Below are positions 11,159 to 64,000 of a DNA stretch of 64,000 nt, in pieces (position 1 is the first letter of the stretch; each line of letters starts with the position of its first letter). The stretch lies in the NCBI GenBank assembly GCA_029953675.1, contig JAMWBK010000001.1, positions 682,001-746,000 of the forward strand, written 5' to 3'. Both the position numbers and the translations under genes were made by a program. Under the pieces are notes generated by a model. It searched no databases and was not told the origin of the DNA. It was given only the letters and a program-made list of their open reading frames with translations. Source of the stretch: Rhodosorus marinus CCMP1338. Its lineage: Eukaryota > Plantae > Rhodophyta.

Positions 11159-11386
11159 CCCACCCAGGGGGTTGTGTTGCGGTTGGTTGATATCTTCTCT
11201 GGCCGGTGGGCTGCAGTCCAAGAATGGGCTGTTGGTGGTCTTGAGAGATCTGATCGGTATATATGAAGAATTCCTACTCGGAGATGGACAGTTGGAGAGT
11301 TGTCGGAGCGCGCTAGAGAAGGCTGGGCTTGGGGAGTGAGCGAGCGGAGGGAGTTTTGCTGGTGTGTTGTTCAGTCGTTGCAAACC

Positions 11387-13492
11387 ATGGCAGCTGTCGA
11401 CGACAATCCGAGTATCGAGCTGTGTGCGGAGAATTTCAACATCATCTGCGAGGATCCGGGCTCGGTCGTGAGGAATTACTTCGGAGACGAGCAGTATTGC
11501 TGTGACACTTCCTTCTTTGGGGGAAACAACCCGCTCGAGCCATGGGTGGGGTACGTGATTATACTGGGATTCGGACTGGTTTTCGGACTGTTCACTGTCG
11601 GTCTGGTGTACATCGACTGGAAGCTTCTCAGAACCAAGGCCACGTCAGAGTGGTTCAACACTGCGGGACGAACGATTAAAACGGGACTGACTGCGTCTGT
11701 CATTGTATCGCAGTGGACGTGGGCTGCAACGCTTCTCCAGAGTTCAAACGTGGCCTTTCGATTCGGAATCTCGGGACCGTTCTGGTACGCGGCCGGGGCG
11801 ACAGTCCAGGTCATCCTGTTCTCTATTCTCGCAGTACAAGTGAAGAGGAGGGCTCCAACATGCCATACTTTCCTCGAGATCATCCGGGCTCGGTGGGGCA
11901 AAATCGCCCACATTGTGTTCATGATTTTCGGGTTCATCACGAACATCATCGTGACGAGTATGTTGATCCTCGGAGGGTCTGCGGTCGTAAACGCTCTGAC
12001 AGGAATCGACACGGACGTAGCGTCCATCTTGATTCCCCTGGGCGTGATTGTGTACACTCTGGCTGGCGGTCTGAAGGCGACATTCGTTGCTTCCTACTTC
12101 AACACGGCGGTCATTTTGATTTCCTTGTGTATTTTCGCGTTTTTGACGTATGCGACGTTCCCGGAGCTTGGAAGCGCAGGAGCTGTTTACGACAGACTGC
12201 AGTACGTTGTCACAATTGAACCGGTCGAGGACAATCGCGATGGCTCCTACCTCACCATGTATTCGCTTCGAGGCTTCATGTTCGGGCTGACGAACATTGT
12301 CGGAAACTTCGGAACGGTCTTCGTTGATCAGGCGTATTGGCAGAGCGCCATCGCCGCAACTCCAACGGCCTCATGGAAAGGCTACATCCTGGGAGGACTT
12401 TGCTGGTTTTCGATCCCCTTCACGCTTGCGACCTCGCTGGGACTTGCAGCCAATGCCCTGTCTCTACCAGTCACTTTTGCTGAGGCCGGAGCGGGCCTCG
12501 TCCCACCAGCCACTGCAACTCATATGATGGGTACTGGCGGGTCGTTGCTCATCCTGATTATGCTCTTCATGGCCGTGACTTCGACCGGTGCCGCGGAACA
12601 GATTGCTGTATCGTCTTTGATCTCCTACGACATTTTCAGAACCTACGCCAAGCCAGAAGCCACTGGAAAGCAGATTATCCGCGTCTCCAGAATCTGCATC
12701 GCTTTGTACGGTATCTTCAGCGGATGTCTAGGAATAGCCCTGAACCACATAGGTATTAGCCTGGGCTGGCTGTACTTGTTCATGGGTGTCCTGATTGGAT
12801 CTGCGGTAGTCCCGGTAGCTCTGTCTATTTGTTGGAAGGGAGCAAACGGAACTGGCGCAGTTATTGCAGCGATTACCGGAATGCTGGGCGCGCTCGCCGT
12901 GTGGCTCGGGTTTGGCTCGAGCTTCGAAGGCGGAGTTACGATTGATAACTTGGGCCGGGACGAGGTTATGCTTGCCGGCAACTTGGTGGCCATCGGCTTG
13001 TCCGCTATTATTGTGATCGGCTACTCCCTCTGGCGGCCCGAGAACTGTGATTGGGAAACAACGACAAAGCAGATTCCCCTCATTGAGGAGGATCCCAATG
13101 CCCACTTGACGCAGGCTACTGAGGAGGAGATGACCAGTGCCCTCAAGTGGATCATGATTTGGGGAATCGGGCTCAGTCTTGTCCTCGTCGTAGTTTGGCC
13201 TCTGCTAACTCTACCACTGCCAGTGTTTACTTCGGGCTATTGGACGTTCTGGGTTGTTCTGTCCATTCTTTGGGGTTTGCTGGCCACAATCGCTATGGTT
13301 ATTTTGCCGGTCTACGAGTCCAAGAGCGCGGTTCTCGGTGTTCTGTCATGCGGCAAAGTCGTCACGAAGGAAAGGAAGGCGTATCTGGACAGCCTTGCTG
13401 AACAGGAGAAACTGCAAGATGCCGTCAACTCGTTCGATGAAGTTGAAGCTCAAGAAGTTGATCCCGTGGACGACGTTTCCTTTGAGTCATGA
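11387..13492 (+). CDS. DUR3: Urea-proton symporter DUR3 (sodium:solute symporter family), intronless, ~701 aa
   Basis: Multi-TM ORF with SFFGG...GYVIILGFG, SEWFNTAGRTIKTGLTASVIVSQWTWAATLLQSS, GNFGTVFVDQAYWQSAIAA; ATG at 11387 chosen inside ORF 11300-13492. Confidence 0.95.
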   Translation: MAAVDDNPSIELCAENFNIICEDPGSVVRNYFGDEQYCCDTSFFGGNNPLEPWVGYVIILGFGLVFGLFTVGLVYIDWKLLRTKATSEWFNTAGRTIKTGLTASVIVSQWTWAATLLQSSNVAFRFGISGPFWYAAGATVQVILFSILAVQVKRRAPTCHTFLEIIRARWGKIAHIVFMIFGFITNIIVTSMLILGGSAVVNALTGIDTDVASILIPLGVIVYTLAGGLKATFVASYFNTAVILISLCIFAFLTYATFPELGSAGAVYDRLQYVVTIEPVEDNRDGSYLTMYSLRGFMFGLTNIVGNFGTVFVDQAYWQSAIAATPTASWKGYILGGLCWFSIPFTLATSLGLAANALSLPVTFAEAGAGLVPPATATHMMGTGGSLLILIMLFMAVTSTGAAEQIAVSSLISYDIFRTYAKPEATGKQIIRVSRICIALYGIFSGCLGIALNHIGISLGWLYLFMGVLIGSAVVPVALSICWKGANGTGAVIAAITGMLGALAVWLGFGSSFEGGVTIDNLGRDEVMLAGNLVAIGLSAIIVIGYSLWRPENCDWETTTKQIPLIEEDPNAHLTQATEEEMTSALKWIMIWGIGLSLVLVVVWPLLTLPLPVFTSGYWTFWVVLSILWGLLATIAMVILPVYESKSAVLGVLSCGKVVTKERKAYLDSLAEQEKLQDAVNSFDEVEAQEVDPVDDVSFES

Positions 13493-18535: not shown

Positions 18536-21198
<2,663 letters not shown>

Positions 21199-22697: not shown

Positions 22698-23816
22698 TTA
22701 GCTAGTTAGAGAGTACAACAGGTCCATTTCAACGGCATGTTCTGATCTTCTATCGATCCTATCTTCTGCAGGAGTCTCCAATATCATCGGGATGTGGCTT
22801 AAGCGCTGGTGGTTCATGATTCGTTGAAATGTTTCCTGACCAATGCACCCTTTGCCGATCTTTTCGTGACGGTCAGCATTGCAGCCAAACTCGCCCTTGG
22901 AATCGTTGAGGTGTATTGCCTTGAGATAGTTCAGCCCAACAATCCTATCAAACTCCTCAACGGTTGTTTCGAGACCTTCTTCAGTCGATATGTCATAACC
23001 AGCGGCATAAGCGTGGCAGGTATCAAGACACACACCCACTCTATCTTTGTATACCACTTTGTCAACAATTGTTCTCAAATCCTCAAGCTGGCATCCGACC
23101 TTGGAGCCGCCTCCACACATGTTCTCAATCAAGATAACAACGTTTTCAACTTTGGATATCACTTGGTTCAGCCCTTCCGACACAAGTTCAAGGCCCTTCT
23201 CATGGGTAACTCCCCCGAGGGCAGATCCGGGATGAAAGTTGTAAAACGCCACTCCGAGTCTCGAGCAGCGGCTGACTTCTTCTTCGAGGCACTCCAGGCT
23301 CTTCTCGCGCATCGTTGGATCACCCGTAGCGAGGTTGATAAGGTACGACCCGTGAGGCACCGCATCTGCTGGCTTGTACCCGCATTTCTCCATCATTGCC
23401 TTGAAACGCTCTACCTCATCCTCTTTCATCGGCGGTGCTTTCCACGCTCGATGAGGCCTCGGGAAAAAGGCAAACGCCGTCGCACCAAGCTCTGCGGCCC
23501 TTAGGATGGCCGATGCGGCTCCTCCAGCAGCGGACACATGAGCACCCAGCCTCGTCTTCGGAAACTTCTCCCGTCGATCCTCAATCACCTCCAGCCACTC
23601 TGGCTCAACATTCTCAGGCTTTCCCACAACCTGATTCTTCTTCTTCTTAATCACGGATTTCTCCACCTTCTCAACCTTTACCTTCTTCTTTACACCAGCC
23701 TTGTCTCTCTTCGCGGTTCCTTTCGAGGCGGGTCGCTGAACTTCTTCATGCGCTTCGCCATCCCTCAGCTCCTCCGGTTCAGATTTCGCATTCCGCTTAC
23801 TCGAACGATTCCTCAT
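22698..23816 (-). CDS. APN1: AP endonuclease 1 / endonuclease IV with basic N-terminal extension, intronless
   Basis: LGAHVSAAGG, PHGSYLINL, NFHPGS, IENMCG, VCLDTCHAYAAGYD, IHLNDSK, DRHEKIG, ILETP motifs; Lys-rich N-terminus. Confidence 0.95.
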   Translation of the reverse strand: MRNRSSKRNAKSEPEELRDGEAHEEVQRPASKGTAKRDKAGVKKKVKVEKVEKSVIKKKKNQVVGKPENVEPEWLEVIEDRREKFPKTRLGAHVSAAGGAASAILRAAELGATAFAFFPRPHRAWKAPPMKEDEVERFKAMMEKCGYKPADAVPHGSYLINLATGDPTMREKSLECLEEEVSRCSRLGVAFYNFHPGSALGGVTHEKGLELVSEGLNQVISKVENVVILIENMCGGGSKVGCQLEDLRTIVDKVVYKDRVGVCLDTCHAYAAGYDISTEEGLETTVEEFDRIVGLNYLKAIHLNDSKGEFGCNADRHEKIGKGCIGQETFQRIMNHQRLSHIPMILETPAEDRIDRRSEHAVEMDLLYSLTS

Positions 23817-30663: not shown

Positions 30664-31862
30664 ATGGCGATGGGGTTTGTTCAGTGCGGGGTTGTCAGGC
30701 TTCGAAGTGGACGTGGAAGCGCTCGATGTAGTAATGGAGGTATTTGGATGGTCGCGGCTGGATATGGGAATGCGGAAGCTTATGGATCTGAGGTATCAAA
30801 GACGGACAGTCGTCCGTTGCAATTGGAAGGGTGTGATCTTTACTTGCCTGAAGAAGAAATCACTTCAATTGTTCATTTCACGCCGGGCGCTCTGGTTTCT
30901 TCGCAGCCGCACCTCTTTTATGGGAATTTCCTCTCCTCTTTGAGTGACTTTGGGATTGCAATTATCTCAACTCCGTATGACACTTCCTTCGATCATCTTA
31001 AGCTTGGGAAAGACGTTGCAACCAAGTATGTGAACGCGTATGCTGCACTGCTGCCTCGCCTTCCCAATACATGGGTCCCTACTTTCGGAATGGGCCATTC
31101 TCTCGGAGCCAAGCTTCAAGTATTAATGAACTGTGTTCCGGAGATTCGCCAAAGGTTCCCCCCGCGTGCTTCCAACGTGCTGATCTCCTACAATAACTTC
31201 GACTCCGCGGAGTCCATTCCGGCGTACGAGAATATTATAGATGGACTACGCGTTCTCGAAAGCCTCAGTAAGCTGAAGATGTCAAAGAAGCTGAGGGAAT
31301 GTACTGCGTATTTTAAACAACTCACTCGTTCCTTCTTGCTCTTTTGCCGATAGACCCGTTGTTGGATTCTGTAGGAGTCGCGATGGGAGTCGACCTCAAA
31401 AGCTCAAGGTTTCGAGATATTAATATCGAACAGATCTTCGACAATCTGAGAAACTTCACTGGCGACGTGGACCCCCCGACATCAGTCTTCGAGTCCATGG
31501 TGCGAAACTCTTATGCTGTGCCTGACAATTGTGTTATTAGCTTCGCCACGGATAGCATCGATCAGTCGGACATCCTTGAAGCCGATCTGAGGGGTCGCCA
31601 CGGAAAGAGAACTGTTCGCAGGCCCCTGGCTGGAACGCATCTGACCCCCATGATGCCCGCCTCAGATGAGCTGCGAGATTTTGGTCTCGGAAGGGACTTA
31701 CAAAACTATCTGCAAGAGACGGTCCAAAGCGTACGAACGCAGTACGACAAGGAGTTCCAGGACCTCGTCGTCACGACAGTGGCATTCTTGAGGCTGATGG
31801 AGGAGGATTGCAACAGACGGTTGCTGGGTCCCGGTCAGGAATCTTCCACAATGGAACGCTGA
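30664..31862 (+). CDS. DUF1350-family alpha/beta-hydrolase-fold protein, probably plastid-targeted; intron 31268-31353
   Basis: VHFTPGALV..PHLFY, TPYDTSFDH, GMGHSLGAKLQVL, LISYNN, GTHLTP; MAMGFV-type transit peptide; the splice restores frame. Confidence 0.85.
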
Positions 31863-36282: not shown

Positions 36283-37246
36283 AAAAACAAAAACAAACTG
36301 AGATGAAAGAAAACAGTGTACTAAAGAATTATTAGATACAGTAATCGTTTATTGGTTAGAACAGAAATTCCAGCAACGGCCAATCAAGTATCCACAAGTG
36401 TGCCCTTCGCTTTCATCTCAGAAATTATTTTGTTTTGAATATTATTAGGAATATGTGACTATCTGGTCCAATCGTTTGTTGACATCTCCATCTCATCTTT
36501 GTTTTTAAATGTTTCTAAACTCTCGCTCGGAAAAGAGGTTTTTTTTGGATGATCTTAGATTATGGTGCTGGTTTTATTCAATAATAAAATAATTCCGGCT
36601 TGGTTTCTCAAACAGTTCTAACTCTGGTTATATTGGACTTTTACACTGTTTTGGGTGGATGACTTTCTTCCGATTTTCTTTCCCTTCCTCGAGCTTGCTA
36701 TTTTATTGACGAGAGGTCCTTGCCCCCACCCACCCCTCCCCCTCCTTGCCGCGTCCACATCCAGAAGGCCGGTTTTGGCCGAGAAAAGTCTTTAGCTTCT
36801 ACCTTTTGGGGGGGAATTCAGGCCCCTATCCTCCCAAACCTCCCCCTCCTCTCTTTTGTTCGCCTCCTGTGCTTTATCTGAGAAATTGAGAATATTGGTA
36901 AGAATTGTTTTCGAAAAACGTTTTGGACCAAAAGAGATATGCGACCGATGTACTGTGAAGGTACAGCTGCTTTGCGGTCAAAATTTCTTATGGGGTTTGG
37001 GGGAGGGGGTGGATGGGTGGATGGGGTTGGGAGGGTGGGGGAAGAGGGGGGGGGCGTAGGATCGTATCTATTGTCTTCTTCTTCCTCTTGTTCGGTATGC
37101 GCGGATGATTTTTTCTTTTAAGCGTTCTATGAGTAGTGTTTGGGAGTTCCCCGTGGAATACTATGGCTTTACAAATTTGAATTTCATATGAGGGTGGGGG
37201 GAAGGGATAAGTTTGGAGTTTTAGGTTTGGTGGGTTTTCTTGAAGA

Positions 37247-38078
37247 ATGGTGCGGACGAGGTCTAGTGGTGGGGTGATGAGGGATGTAGAGGCGGAGGGT
37301 GCTAGTGGAAGGGCGCGGAAGAGGGCGGCCCTGACTGAGATTCAAGAAAATGTCCCGAAACGGACCCGACGTGGGAAGGTAGAGAGTATCCCGGCGACAG
37401 ATGATTTGAAGGCCAGAGACGGAGGAAAATACGTGCAGGGTGGTCGCGAAGGATCTGGTAAACGGGAAGGGGATGTGGGTGGTGATAATCCACGAAGGTC
37501 AGGGGGTCGGAGAGTGGCCCCAAAGGCCGAGGACGTCCCACAGGTGAACAAGCTACCATCAAAGAAAACAAAACGGCCGGGTTCTAGGAGACCCCAAAAG
37601 CGAACGAAGAAGCAGAAGGAGGAAGAGCGGAGGGCAGATTCTTCTGAACTAGTGCCGGCAGATGTTCTTCCTGGACCGCGCAGACCATCTTTTGGAGGGT
37701 CCTCCGATGACAGCAACCAAAACAAAAAAGTTATCACTTACTCAAAGAAGACCCAAAGAGAGTCCAGGCAGCCACTGACGACACATCTGCGAGCTATTCG
37801 AAGAAAAAGTAGCATTCGAAAACGAAGATCATCCGCGGGCTCCTGTACAATAGACGGTGAGGACGTAAGTTAAAAGGATGAACCCTCACACCTCTGGCAG
37901 ACCTCTGGGCTACTTGGAACTGAAAACTCTGCACCATGCATAGGATGAGCTGTTCGAGTTAGAATCTGAAGAGGACGGATCTCCAGAGGGGAAAGAGTCT
38001 GCGCGAATGGAGAGGTTCCTGGAGCAGCAGAGAAGGATATGGGACGAAATTGACAAGTACGAGCTGGAGGAAACCTAG
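37247..38078 (+). CDS. Sororin-like (CDCA5-like) cohesin regulator candidate, 250 aa; exons 37247-37864, 37944-38078
   Basis: Basic low-complexity exon 1 with RAALTEIQEN and ITYSKK; 79-nt GTAAGT..TAG phase-0 intron; exon 2 ends RMERFLEQQRRIWDEIDKYELEET*. Confidence 0.6.
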
Positions 38079-40288: not shown

Positions 40289-42715
40289 CTACGGCGGTGG
40301 CAAGAGTCTTCGACACGTGGGACACTCCATCTTCTCATCCATCCACTGCTGCAAGCAGTCCTCGTGAAAAACATGCTCACACGGGGTTGCCATCCGGTTG
40401 GGACCGTTCAGGCTCACGCTTGTCATACAAATTACACAATCTACAAGTCTCGGTCCAGTATATCCGATCGACCCCTTCTTCCCTCTGTAGTGATTGCCAG
40501 GTACGGGTACAACTTCGTCCAGGTTTCCAGACTCGACGTCTCCGAGACGCTCAACCTGTGGCGCTGGTTCCGTCAACATCCGGTAGTAGTCATACTTCTC
40601 AGGCAAAAACCGCTTTGGAATCAAGCACCTCGCACCGTATCGGTGCTGAAGCAACAGAATTGAAGCCTGGAAAGCTACCCAAGCCATCAGCCAATTCCCG
40701 GTCATCTATTCCCGTTCCAACCAGCCATGCAAGTCAGTAAAATACGTCAATTACGGCAGATTCAACTCGGAAAGAAACTGAGAACAAACGAAACGGGTCA
40801 CTTACGTATTGGGGTCTCACGTGGAGGAAATTTCTTGGGCAACAAAGAAAGTACAGTGGAATGGCCAGTCGAGTCGCGCTCATCCCGACAATGTATAGCG
40901 GATGAAGGGGACGCCTGTCAAGTTAATAGTGGTCATGGTTAGATATTTGGAGTCAGTCTATTTTGGATGTGGGCATTGTGGAGAACATACCTATGGTCCT
41001 CAATGATACTCAAGAAAATCTGAGGTACCCAGAACGAGTACAGAGCAAACACAAACACTCTCATATACTTTTGCAGCCGATAGAGCATGATGAGCCCAAA
41101 CAGCAGAGATCCGTAAAACCGAGAATACAGGATAGAAAGCTCTCTCCGCATCGCGTCCCAGCCTCCCGAAAATCCCTAAGCATGGCAGAGACAGAACAGT
41201 TTCGCTCGTTGGTCCTCAAATCGGAGCGACGCAGATGTTGTCGATTCCGCCTGACGCGGCCGAAAACTTACGGATGGTCTTCGTGCCTTCCATATCATAA
41301 GCATGTATCGCATCTCGAAGATAGAAAAAATAATAAACTTGAAAAACGCCGCTATTGCGAACGCGTTAAATAGCGTTGAAAACCGTTGCGCAAACATTCC
41401 CATTGTAAGATGCGCGAGGAAAAGGTACGAGTCGCTGACAGTTTGCAGGCCAACAGAAAGGAGGCTCACGCGATTCGCTCCCGCTGGAGTCGAGGTCATC
41501 TCCATCTGCCTTATCAGGACAAGCACTTGCGTGAATGCAACGAACGTGACGAGCAAGGTGTAGTTGATAGCCTTCACAAAGAGAGTCTCCCGGTCAAACG
41601 TCGCTAGCTCAATCTCAGCGGAAGTACCACATTGCTTTGACGTAATGTTTCCGTTCATTTTGATGTATTCACTATTATTCCCCTCATGCGACGCAAGCTC
41701 CCTTGGACTTGGAGTGGTACCGGAAAAGTGCCCGGGGGCAATGTAAAACACGGCCTCAAAGTCGCACTTGCTTTGGACCGGGTGACTACCCAGTTTTGAG
41801 CCTCTTCATACGCATTAAAAGAGGCGGAGATTCAGCTACCAACCAGGCCAGTAAAAGCGTAGATATCAAAAGAGGACCCCACGGGGTTCAAGAAAGGTCC
41901 ATAAAATGCTCACCTTCCCAGATAGTGATCTCGTTGACGCTCCAGGTCCGCTGCTAAAGCATCCGCGAAGGCCTCCTCGGACAACTTCCAAGATCCCTTC
42001 TGCTCTGAAACAAGCTCGTACAGTCTATGCAGAGCGTTGTCCTCATACAGAAAATCGCCCACGAGCATAATAATCCCCTCATGAACCTTGTAAACTCCAA
42101 TAACTTTTATCAAGACATCGCGAAAGGTTCGATAAGCTCCATCACGAAGAATTATCTCCCCGTCGACGTAGTGCATGTCCGAACCAAGCTTCTCCCTTGG
42201 GTGGTTCTCAGCATTCAGAGAAGCAAAACCATCTGGGTTCTCAAACAGCAGATCTTGCTTGGCGAATTCCGGGTCAGGAGCCTCTCCGAATGGAAACGTG
42301 TCGTTGACAGCAACCGACCAAGAACCATCGTAGTCCCGCTTGAGATTCAACGGGTACGTGCTCTCCGGAGGTGGGGCGTGAGCTGTCCTATTTTGCGCGT
42401 ACTCCGACATTACCCGGTCCACTTTCGAACTCCTTCCCACCCCAGAGTTGCTGTGCACCGTTGACAGTGTTTGGAACTACAAAATTAAACAGGCGGAGAC
42501 AAGGCCACATTAGTTATAAACCGCAAATCTTGAGACAGAAATTCAACGAAAGAGTGAGAGCGTGCTCATGCTCTGTGACGAACCTTGGCCCTCGTCATAT
42601 TAGCCACGAGCAAAGCCACAAGCAACGCGAAGATGAGTCTAGGGCCAGCGGCAACATTCGCAGCAAAGTAGGGAGGATTACCACCGCCAAGAGCACCGTT
42701 CCCGAAAATAGGCAT
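40289..42715 (-). CDS. Transmembrane RING-H2 E3 ubiquitin ligase of the TUL1/Dsc1/FLY type (multi-exon)
   Basis: Lumenal N-terminus; TM region KAINYTLLVTFVAFTQVLVLIRQMEMTSTP, SFWVPQI; YGARCLIPKRFLPEKYDY; RING CVICM..TPCEHVFHEDCLQQWMDEKMECPTCRRLLPP. Start codon inferred. Confidence 0.9.
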
Positions 42716-61799: not shown

Positions 61800-64000
61800 A
61801 TGCTTGGCTTTGGGTTGGTTCGATCCTTTGTCGGGGTTGGATCGCCATGCACGAGCGCGACGCTGCTCAGAAATGGAAGGAGAAAGCATGTACGGCTTGG
61901 ATCCGGGATCAAGATGACAGCCGTGAGCTCAGCCAAGTTCTCATCGTCTGACACTTCTGAGAAACCGGTTTCGAAGGACGTGCTTTCTTTTCAGGAGGCC
62001 ATCTCCCGGCTCCAAAAGTACTGGGCGGACAAGGGATGTATAGTTTGGCATCCTTACAACCACGAGGTGGGAGCTGGTACAATGAACCCTGCGACCTTTC
62101 TCCGAGTTTTGGGACCTGAGCCATGGTCTGTGGCTTACGATGAGCCGTCAGTACGTCCTGACGATTCAAGATACGGCGAGAACCCAAATCGAGTCCAACG
62201 ACATACGCAGTTTCAGGTGATCATGAAACCTGCTCCCAGAAACTGCCAGGAGCTCCTGCTCGGATCTTTTCAAGTTCTAGGAATAGACACCGCAGCTCAC
62301 GACGTGCGATTCGTAGAAGACAACTGGGAGTCACCAGCTCTTGGGGCTTGGGGCCTCGGCTGGGAGGTCTGGCTCGACGGCATGGAGGTGACTCAGTTCA
62401 CGTACTTCCAGCAAGCAGGGGGTTACACCTGTGACCCTGTATCACTGGAAATTACCTACGGACTGGAAAGAATTATGATGTCGCTGCAGAATAAGAACCA
62501 CTTCAAGGATATCGTTTTTTCTCCTGGTGGAATTAGCTATGGAGACATTTTTATGCAGAACGAAGTTGAGATGAGTACGTACAACATGGACAAGGCCAAT
62601 GTTGAGAGAAACCAAATCCTCTTCGATGCCTATGAGAAGGTTTGCATGAGGGAGAAACAACACTGTGCTTTGCCATTGACTTGCTGCAATTCCACGGCGC
62701 TGAAGCCCACCTTGCCATACAATCACAACCCGTAGGAAGCCCTTGATATGATAGAGAGTCGACTTCCCGTTCCTGCCTACAACTACTTGCTCAAAGCGAG
62801 CCATACGTTCAACATTCTCGACGCAAGAGGTGCGGTTGGAGTAACTGAAAGAGCAGCGTACGTGACACCAGTCGAATATGTCGAGTTGCTTTCTCGCGCT
62901 GGGTTGTAGACGATGACTCTTAACAAACTCTTATTGCCCCATGCATGATTCTTTATAGTTTCTTCAGGCGAATGAGAAACCTGGCCAGAGAAGTTTCGGG
63001 CTTATGGTATGATCGGCGCAAGGAGCTTGGCTTCCCGCTCCTGTCCCCCGAAAGTGACTCCAAGGAACCGGTTCGTTGGGGCTCCTCCTGAATCTTGTTT
63101 AGAATCTTTATTAGGATATCTCATCTCTTACAAGAAACGTCGCCTGGGCCAATTCTTCAGGAGATTCCTAGAAAGGAATGGCAGCTGATGGCCGAAGTAG
63201 TTCCGTTTATCCTTGAGATTGGGACGGAGGAGCTGCCCGCAGATGATGTAGACCATGCAATCACTCAGGTAAGCTATGGCTCGGCTATACGGGTGCGAGC
63301 AAGTGGAGATTGAGATTGGTCGCTTCCCGTGCTTTGTTTGCGTAGTTTGAGCGGCACTTGAAAGAGCTACTGGTATCGAGTGGACTAAGCCACGGATCGT
63401 TCAAGGCCTTTGCAACGCCGAGAAGACTTGTCGCGGTTATTGACGATCTCGCCTCCAGTCAAGCGGATTCTGAAGAAGAGGTGTGTAATTGCTGAATTGT
63501 TGAATAGAAAAGGGTAAAAGCTTAACCCTAAGAGGCACGTCCTCTTCATCCGCCGCCTCCATAGGTCAAAGGCCCCCCGCGGAAGATAGCTGTGGACGAG
63601 CATGGGGAGTTAACAAAGGCAGCGCTCGGCTTTTGTAAGAAGAACGGGGTTGACCCGGCGGATGTTGAATGGCGAGACTTAAAGGTAGGCTTCAAGTCAT
63701 CATTTTCCACCCGTTTAAGGGACGTAGAGATAGTTTCGAAACGCTTACCGAAGGTGGCAATTGTAAACGCGTTCCTGCTTTCCAGGGTCAGAGCTACCTC
63801 TACGCGACGGTCAAGACGAAAGGCAGGCACGCAGGAGAGATCCTAGCTGAATGTCTTCCATCCGTTATCTCAAAGATTGGGTTCGTGAAGACCATGCGTT
63901 GGAACGCCTCGGGAACGGCATTTTCGAGACCGATAAGGTAATTAAGTGCCGCAATCTGCGCAACTGTCACGTCTTTCTCGAGGAGTAGTTCGGCCCAGGC
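61800..64000 (+). CDS. glyQS: Organellar glycine--tRNA ligase, fused alpha+beta (GlyQS type), truncated by window end
   Basis: Transit peptide; [77 protein letters not shown]; beta part [20 protein letters not shown] in downstream exons. Confidence 0.95.

Follow-up and report, generated by a model that had tools for sequence, protein, structure and literature searches.

Sororin holds sister chromatids together after DNA replication. It is a fast-evolving protein that was thought to be specific to animals until 2024, when orthologs were demonstrated in fission yeast and Arabidopsis (PMC11148194), recognized from C-terminal matches as weak as the one described here and then proved genetically. 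These two proteins, Sor1 and AtSORORIN, were found by a weak match to the C-terminal Sororin box (E = 1 at the proteome level for Sor1 and E = 0.04 for AtSORORIN) together with a K/R-rich stretch; neither had a Pfam domain when it was found, and genetic validation came later (PMC11148194). The box of animal Sororins follows the consensus [WFY]xxxΦNxxFxE[AΦ][ED]x[FY]ELxΦE (Nasmyth and colleagues, PMC10656103), and the contact residues of human Sororin are W233, F241 and F247 (PMC10656103). Sor1 is inactivated by mutation at F299, V302, D303 and Y305 (PMC11148194). In the known Sororins a basic stretch precedes the box (PMC11148194, PMC10656103), and the linker between the two is polar and 10-20 residues long (PMC11148194 Methods).

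Other motifs are distributed less evenly over the family. The APC/C degron of the vertebrate proteins and of Dalmatian is a KEN box; Dalmatian, from Drosophila, carries a Sororin box at its C-terminus and is targeted by the APC/C (PMC10656103, PMC11148194). The KEN box is missing from both Sor1 and AtSORORIN, and APC/C degradation of Sor1 was not seen in vitro (PMC11148194). AtSORORIN is also without the FGF motif, of which Sor1 has a putative copy (PMC11148194), and FGF is absent from the Sordaria protein, as it is from AtSORORIN. Consequently neither FGF nor KEN decides membership of the family, and a degron is not a family-defining feature of Sororin.

We analysed a 64-kb window, that is, the whole stretch of 64,000 nucleotides of Rhodosorus marinus CCMP1338 DNA, in which a sequence-only reading had proposed a two-exon gene for a Sororin ortholog in a probable red alga, of a kind that annotation would call hypothetical. 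When joined in frame, the two exons encode 250 amino acids with a pI of about 10 and a composition dominated by a few residues (R36/E27/S24/G24/K23), only seven residues being aromatic. NCBI lists the same 250 amino acids, without a difference, as hypothetical protein NDN08_005219 from Rhodosorus marinus, annotated on a 3.8-Mb contig, so that the proposed organism and annotation status were both correct. A 242-aa protein from the MMETSP transcriptome of another Rhodosorus marinus isolate (P0002) has 74% identity to NDN08_005219, is unbroken at the exon junction (..DG[EG]DDELFE..) and has the same ..YELEET end, and this continuity of a transcript-derived sequence supports both the splice and the stop. 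The three strings quoted in the sequence-only reading were located at residues 26-35 (RAALTEIQEN), at residues 163-168 (ITYSKK) and as the final 24 residues (RMERFLEQQRRIWDEIDKYELEET). The gene and its protein are real, and the earlier observation of them is confirmed. The features discussed below are listed in the table.

Table. Features of the candidate gene and of its surroundings, in positions of the 64-kb window.
Feature	Position	Strand	Residues	Remarks
Sodium:solute symporter family ORF	11300-13492	+		
Acidic repeat ORF	18536-19339	-		267 aa, hyper-acidic, (AEIEAEID)n-type repeats; no Pfam match
Tail of the acidic repeat ORF	18539-18598	-		top decoy for the box
AP_endonuc_2 / xylose-isomerase-like TIM barrel ORF	22698-23816	-		
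DUF1350 protein	30664-31862	+		apparently split across two adjacent ORFs; possibly intron or frameshift
C-rich tract	36828-36856	+		upstream of the G-rich tract
G-rich tract GGGGGAGGGGGTGGATGGGTGGATGGGGTTGGGAGGGTGGGGGAAGAGGGGGGGGGCG	36985-37060	+		long; about 190-260 nt upstream of the ATG
Exon 1	37247-37864	+		618 nt, 206 codons, from ATG (ORF list, sequence)
N-terminal island ARKRAALTEIQENVPKRTR	37313-37369	+	23-41	R26-x-x-L29-x-x-I32 and basic stretch
RRPSFGG	37679-37699	+	145-151	weak look-alike of vertebrate RRSCFGF (FGF); invariant between isolates
VITYSKK	37730-37750	+	162-168	proposed YSR-like motif; invariant between isolates
K/R-rich cluster RAIRRKSSIRKRR	37790-37828	+	182-194	100% conserved between isolates
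Acidic/polar linker	37835-38003	+	197-226	interrupted by the intron; sole SP site S219-P220
Intron	37865-37943	+		79 nt, GTAAGT...CATAG, between codons; P0002 continuous at the junction
Exon 2	37944-38078	+	207-250	codons 207-250 and TAG stop
Candidate Sororin box RMERFLEQQRRIWDEIDKYELEET	38004-38075	+	227-250	aromatics F231, W239, Y245
RING-H2 finger ORF	40289-40705	-		matches DUF2921 transmembrane E3 ligase domain
ORF upstream of the RING-H2 ORF	41176-41751	-		membrane-spanning in appearance
Glycyl-tRNA synthetase alpha subunit	61800-62735	+		bacterial-type; PF02091, E = 1e-109

The final 20 residues, FLEQQRRIWDEIDKYELEET, align with the animal consensus without a gap and are anchored C-terminally on the last residue of the protein. 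They agree exactly at seven of the 12 constrained positions (1, 11, 12, 13, 15, 16 and 17), carry W in place of F at position 9, and are mismatched at positions 5, 6, 19 and 20. The three aromatic residues of the candidate box in this 250-aa protein have the spacing (8/6/+5) of human W233, F241 and F247 in a protein of 252 aa. The two key Phe positions, which cohesion requires and which lie six residues apart (human F241/F247; Sor1 F299/Y305), are W239 and Y245 here at the same spacing, and when paired by spacing from the published positions the four residues F299, V302, D303 and Y305 of Sor1 fall on W239, I242, D243 and Y245. Between the two isolates the substitutions in the box are E233A and K244N, both at unconstrained "x" positions. 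The box motif as given in the sequence-only reading is present in form, except that seven and not six residues separate the first two aromatics; this seven-residue gap is that of the published consensus as well. The final residue, moreover, is T rather than E.

The sequence-only reading had also proposed a search of the last 30 residues with a Sororin profile, and here its expectation failed. In a Pfam scan at E<=10, Sororin_C (PF25220) was not matched by the protein, by exon 2 or by the C-terminal 24-mer, nor was Sororin_middle (PF09666) matched by the protein or by exon 2. As a control, a human Sororin sequence matched both profiles, and its residues 205-252 were 100% identical to those of database primate Sororins. 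In an hhalign comparison of the Rhodosorus pair with 12 vertebrate Sororins the box was left unaligned and the best alignment lay elsewhere with a probability of 0.3%. An HMM of 29 distinct amniote C-termini gave no alignment, this set being nearly invariant and too narrow. That no profile is significant, whether from Pfam, hhalign or the amniote set, agrees with what we regard as the main alternative, possible although rather unlikely: a chance resemblance, in which a disordered and basic protein of the nucleus or nucleolus, confined to Rhodosorus and with an unrelated role such as one in RNA binding, chromatin or ribosome biogenesis, has an acidic amphipathic C-terminal helix that happens to fit a loose box.

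Because the filters of HMMER mask weak scores, we probed PF25220 with chimeras. The human 24-mer scored 44.8 bits and its first half followed by a GS tail 18.6 bits. Replacing the GS tail with Rhodosorus residues 239-250 raised the score to 31.0 bits, the alignment reaching model position 21, whereas composition-preserving shuffles of the same 12 residues gave 18.5-19.5 bits and extended the alignment in none of 12 cases. The Rhodosorus half-box is thus worth about 12 bits where the shuffles are worth about none, which counts against chance resemblance. The reverse chimera, with its first half from Rhodosorus and its second from human Sororin, scored 23.1 bits, compared with 19.0 bits for GS and 17.7 and 18.5 bits for two shuffles, or a gain of about 4 bits. 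From these values we estimate about 9 bits for the complete Rhodosorus box, using a fixed cost of 7.2 bits deduced from the human halves. This corresponds roughly to P = 2e-5 for a C-terminal 24-mer, slightly below the HMMER Forward filter, and lies far below the PF25220 gathering score of 27.4 bits.

Single substitutions in the human 24-mer indicated where the bits are lost. In the Rhodosorus box Trp stands at the position of human F241, the family's most conserved Phe, and the change F241W costs 7.1 bits, a point in favour of chance resemblance. Roughly 11 further bits are lost through the Rhodosorus ET in place of the terminal ΦE and E in place of the preceding L (L250E, -5.7 bits; V251E, -3.4; E252T, -2.1). 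The other changes were smaller (W233F, -3.5 bits; M237Q, -1.7; N238R, -1.6), and F247Y was tolerated at -1.3 bits. Changing the human EAAEQ to DEIDK gained 4.0 bits, so at its core the Rhodosorus box follows the family model more closely than human Sororin does.

How often such a fit would arise by chance was estimated with an independent, count-based score derived from the published animal consensus. The probability of an equal or better C-terminally anchored score was 1.5e-5 for a generic composition and 7.7e-5 for the C-terminal composition of the protein itself, and the box came out on top when the 64-kb window was translated in six frames and its 2105 stop-anchored 20-mers were ranked. 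Once the anchoring is given up, three of 61,373 six-frame 20-mers in the window equal or beat this score, as chance resemblance would have it. When the top decoys of the window were placed in the PF25220 chimeras, they gained 5-15 bits in the second-half position and none in the first-half position, where the Rhodosorus sequence adds its 4 bits or so. The strongest decoy was the tail of the acidic repeat ORF, whose C-terminal 12-mer gained 14.7 bits without possessing the aromatics. Acidic tails can therefore mimic half of the box, and since the acidic part is so readily mimicked, it is the aromatic triad, the register and the anchoring that carry the evidence. The occurrence of all three aromatics and an ExΦD..YEL core in a single ungapped register ending on the last residue, at these anchored probabilities, argues against chance. 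We estimate about 0.1-0.8 chance matches per proteome of 10,000 proteins from the box alone, which is comparable to the evidence that nominated AtSORORIN (E = 0.04) and Sor1 (E = 1). From these comparisons, the C-terminal likeness to the Sororin box appears to be real, in register and beyond what composition would give.

Conservation between the two Rhodosorus isolates is unevenly spread along the protein. Residues 143-250 and residues 23-41 each show 89% identity, while the remainder has about 50% identity with indels. The AlphaFold2 model of NDN08_005219 has a mean pLDDT of 54 and is disordered except for one confident helix at residues 220-249 (pLDDT 83-96) and two weakly predicted ones at 23-35 and 178-187. 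For a primate Sororin the same procedure gave a mean pLDDT of 57 and a C-terminal helix at 227-248. In both predictions most of the chain is unstructured and a short alpha-helix closes it at the C-terminus, as is characteristic of Sororins. The K/R cluster stands upstream of the box and corresponds to the basic stretch of known Sororins, although the linker that follows is acidic and about 30 residues long, compared with 10-20 in those proteins. In the predicted model the overall architecture (a short, disordered protein with a K/R cluster and a single terminal helix) matches that of the Sororin family, and this combination of size, disorder, K/R cluster and helix is a further argument against chance resemblance.

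The shorter motifs gave a less uniform picture. ITYSKK had been proposed as a YSR-like Pds5 motif, but in a PF09666 chimera the YSK segment scored 47.6 bits compared with 44.8-46.2 for shuffles (a gain of 1.4 to 2.8 bits), and we could not maintain this assignment beyond the shuffled controls; the unrecognized YSK motif is another point on the side of chance resemblance. RRPSFGG, which has a single Phe, stood about 3.7 bits over shuffles in the same type of chimera. The order of the RRPSFGG and YSK segments is reversed relative to the vertebrate motifs, and the vertebrate combination of YSR and FGF for binding Pds5/Wapl, itself not universal among Sororins, was not found. At the N-terminus, the resemblance of MVRTRSSGG (37247-37276, residues 1-10; MVRTRSGG in the other isolate) to eutherian MSxRRTRSGG was judged to be probably coincidental, because the eutherian N-terminus is not kept in monotremes or reptiles.

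Within the conserved island at residues 23-41, RAALTEIQEN contains a D-box-like RxxLxxI, and a KEN box is absent. The island may be an APC/C degron. The same observation could be accommodated by another APC/C-regulated cell-cycle protein, either securin-like or a short D-box regulator, with a helix that binds a partner other than cohesin. Like many APC/C substrates the protein is short, disordered and basic, and a degron does not by itself point to Sororin, as Sor1 and AtSORORIN do without KEN. We nevertheless consider this minor alternative improbable: by a composition-based estimate, about 0.2 RxxLxx[LIVM] matches are expected by chance in a protein of this composition, and the Pfam scan gave nothing specific to another family. 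Furthermore, we know of no conserved C-terminal aromatic box in securins, which counts against a securin-like protein in particular.

Inhibitors of cyclin-dependent kinases of the KRP/p27 type (CDI, Pfam PF02234) are likewise short, disordered and basic, and have a conserved C-terminal F..F..KY/W-N-F-D motif. The Rhodosorus protein shares with them these general properties and an aromatic motif near the C-terminus, and ERFL...RIWDEIDKYEL superficially resembles the CDI pattern (F..W..KY). The alignment, however, requires two indels. PF02234 was unmatched in the Pfam scan, and chimeras with p27 scored 36.8-37.8 bits, within the range of shuffles (28.7-48.3), so that the CDI profile does not separate the Rhodosorus segment from shuffled sequence. 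In addition, the protein stops before the PLxGxYEW half of the CDI domain. We rejected this candidate as very improbable.

Searches for relatives returned to Rhodosorus each time. A search of 1.84 billion representatives with a profile built from both Rhodosorus proteins matched just the second isolate and one repeat protein judged spurious (P0003), and so revealed no homolog beyond Rhodosorus. Rhodosorus was likewise the sole source of matches when 5.8 billion clusters were searched by word index, with the full-length protein and with residues 143-250, and a JGI metagenome scan with back-translated conserved peptides yielded 600 pattern matches of which none was confirmed. A sequence search of the PDB produced a lone spurious match to a hydroxylamine reductase (E = 1.7), while the human Sororin matched zero PDB chains at E<=0.01. 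This orphan status in all database searches is what chance resemblance would lead one to expect. As for the expectation that the box be conserved in related algae, it holds between the two Rhodosorus isolates, and these searches found no homolog beyond the genus in which to follow it across red algae.

The neighbouring ORFs in the 64-kb window are ordinary nuclear genes. The RING-H2 ORF and the ORF upstream of it on the same strand are probably exons of one gene for a TUL1-like transmembrane E3 ubiquitin ligase. In the glycyl-tRNA synthetase ORF about 63 residues precede the PF02091 domain, and the enzyme may be nucleus-encoded and organelle-targeted. Upstream of the candidate gene, the G-rich tract could represent a G-quadruplex or a promoter element. 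The interval 36300-37260 contained no E2F site (TTTSSCGC), and none of the E2F, MSA and CHR promoter motifs upstream of the gene exceeded the background of the window.

Taken together, these results favour, with modest confidence, the Sororin reading: NDN08_005219 most likely represents Sororin (CDCA5 / Dalmatian / Sor1 / AtSORORIN) in Rhodosorus marinus, the match being one of motifs. It is most likely a fast-evolving, intrinsically disordered, putative nuclear protein. As regards the original proposal of Sororin identity, the in-register box and the architecture support it in part, while the curated profiles remain unmatched, no relatives appear beyond Rhodosorus and the YSK motif is unrecognized. 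Like vertebrate Sororin/CDCA5 (PF25220 and PF09666), the protein has about 250 aa, is largely disordered and basic, and has a K/R cluster followed by a C-terminal helix that finishes at the last residues; the aromatic spacing is identical, and its ExΦ[DE]x[FY]EL core scores higher against the family model than that of human Sororin. It differs from the vertebrate proteins in having no reportable Pfam match, Trp for the invariant Phe, ET for ΦE, a D-box-like sequence instead of a KEN box, a longer linker, and YSK and FGG segments that are weak look-alikes in reversed order. Dalmatian is said to combine Sororin and Shugoshin roles (Yamada et al. 2017, cited in PMC10656103), whereas nothing in the Rhodosorus protein is Shugoshin-like. 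With Sor1 and AtSORORIN it shares the manner of its nomination, from a weak C-terminal box and a K/R-rich stretch in a protein without a Pfam domain. Those two are genetically validated, whereas the Rhodosorus protein is known from its sequence and predicted structure, and eight residues follow the Tyr in Sor1 compared with five here.

If the protein is a Sororin, its amphipathic C-terminal helix (about residues 220-249) would run over the neck of Smc3 and the helices at the N-terminus of the kleisin Scc1/Rad21, with F231, W239 and Y245 occupying the positions of human W233, F241 and F247. Bound in this way, the helix would keep the exit gate of cohesin shut against a releasing activity of the Pds5-Wapl type after replication. 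The K/R cluster might serve as a nuclear-localization element or as a contact with DNA or cohesin, and the conserved block of residues 143-200, which includes RRPSFGG and VITYSKK, could supply short linear motifs for Pds5. Through the conserved RxxLxxI island the protein would be targeted by the APC/C and removed in G1. Each of these binding and functional steps is suggested by analogy with the systems described in PMC10656103 and PMC11148194.

The sequence-only reading assumed that cohesion-maintenance machinery of this kind was once thought specific to animals, a premise that has been out of date since the orthologs of fission yeast and Arabidopsis were shown in 2024 (PMC11148194). Because Sororins are already known in fungi and plants, the gain would be an extension to red algae and a candidate new member, not a new kind of protein; it is motif-based, and incremental rather than conceptual. 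In favour of the Sororin reading, Pds5, Eco1 and Scc3 have reportedly been retained in red algae (PMC4175184; bioRxiv 10.1101/2025.05.08.652912). The two species examined, Cyanidioschyzon and Galdieria, are reported to be without the Scc2 loader (PMC4175184). In our literature search no paper that we found linked Sororin to red algae. That red algae have a bona fide Sororin with a Phe/Trp/Tyr triad, a D-box and not a KEN box, and putative Pds5 motifs in reversed order is a proposition on which we find the balance even. If it holds, the very divergent box, with Trp for an "invariant" Phe, would provide material for testing which contacts matter. With a red-algal member the family would gain a third Archaeplastida/eukaryote branch, which would argue that antagonism of Wapl at the Smc3-kleisin gate is ancestral. 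Sororin-type protection of the exit gate would then trace to the ancestor shared by all Archaeplastida, and probably to a point close to the eukaryotic root, and this would be so even for a lineage in which the Scc2 loader is reportedly missing from both species examined (PMC4175184).
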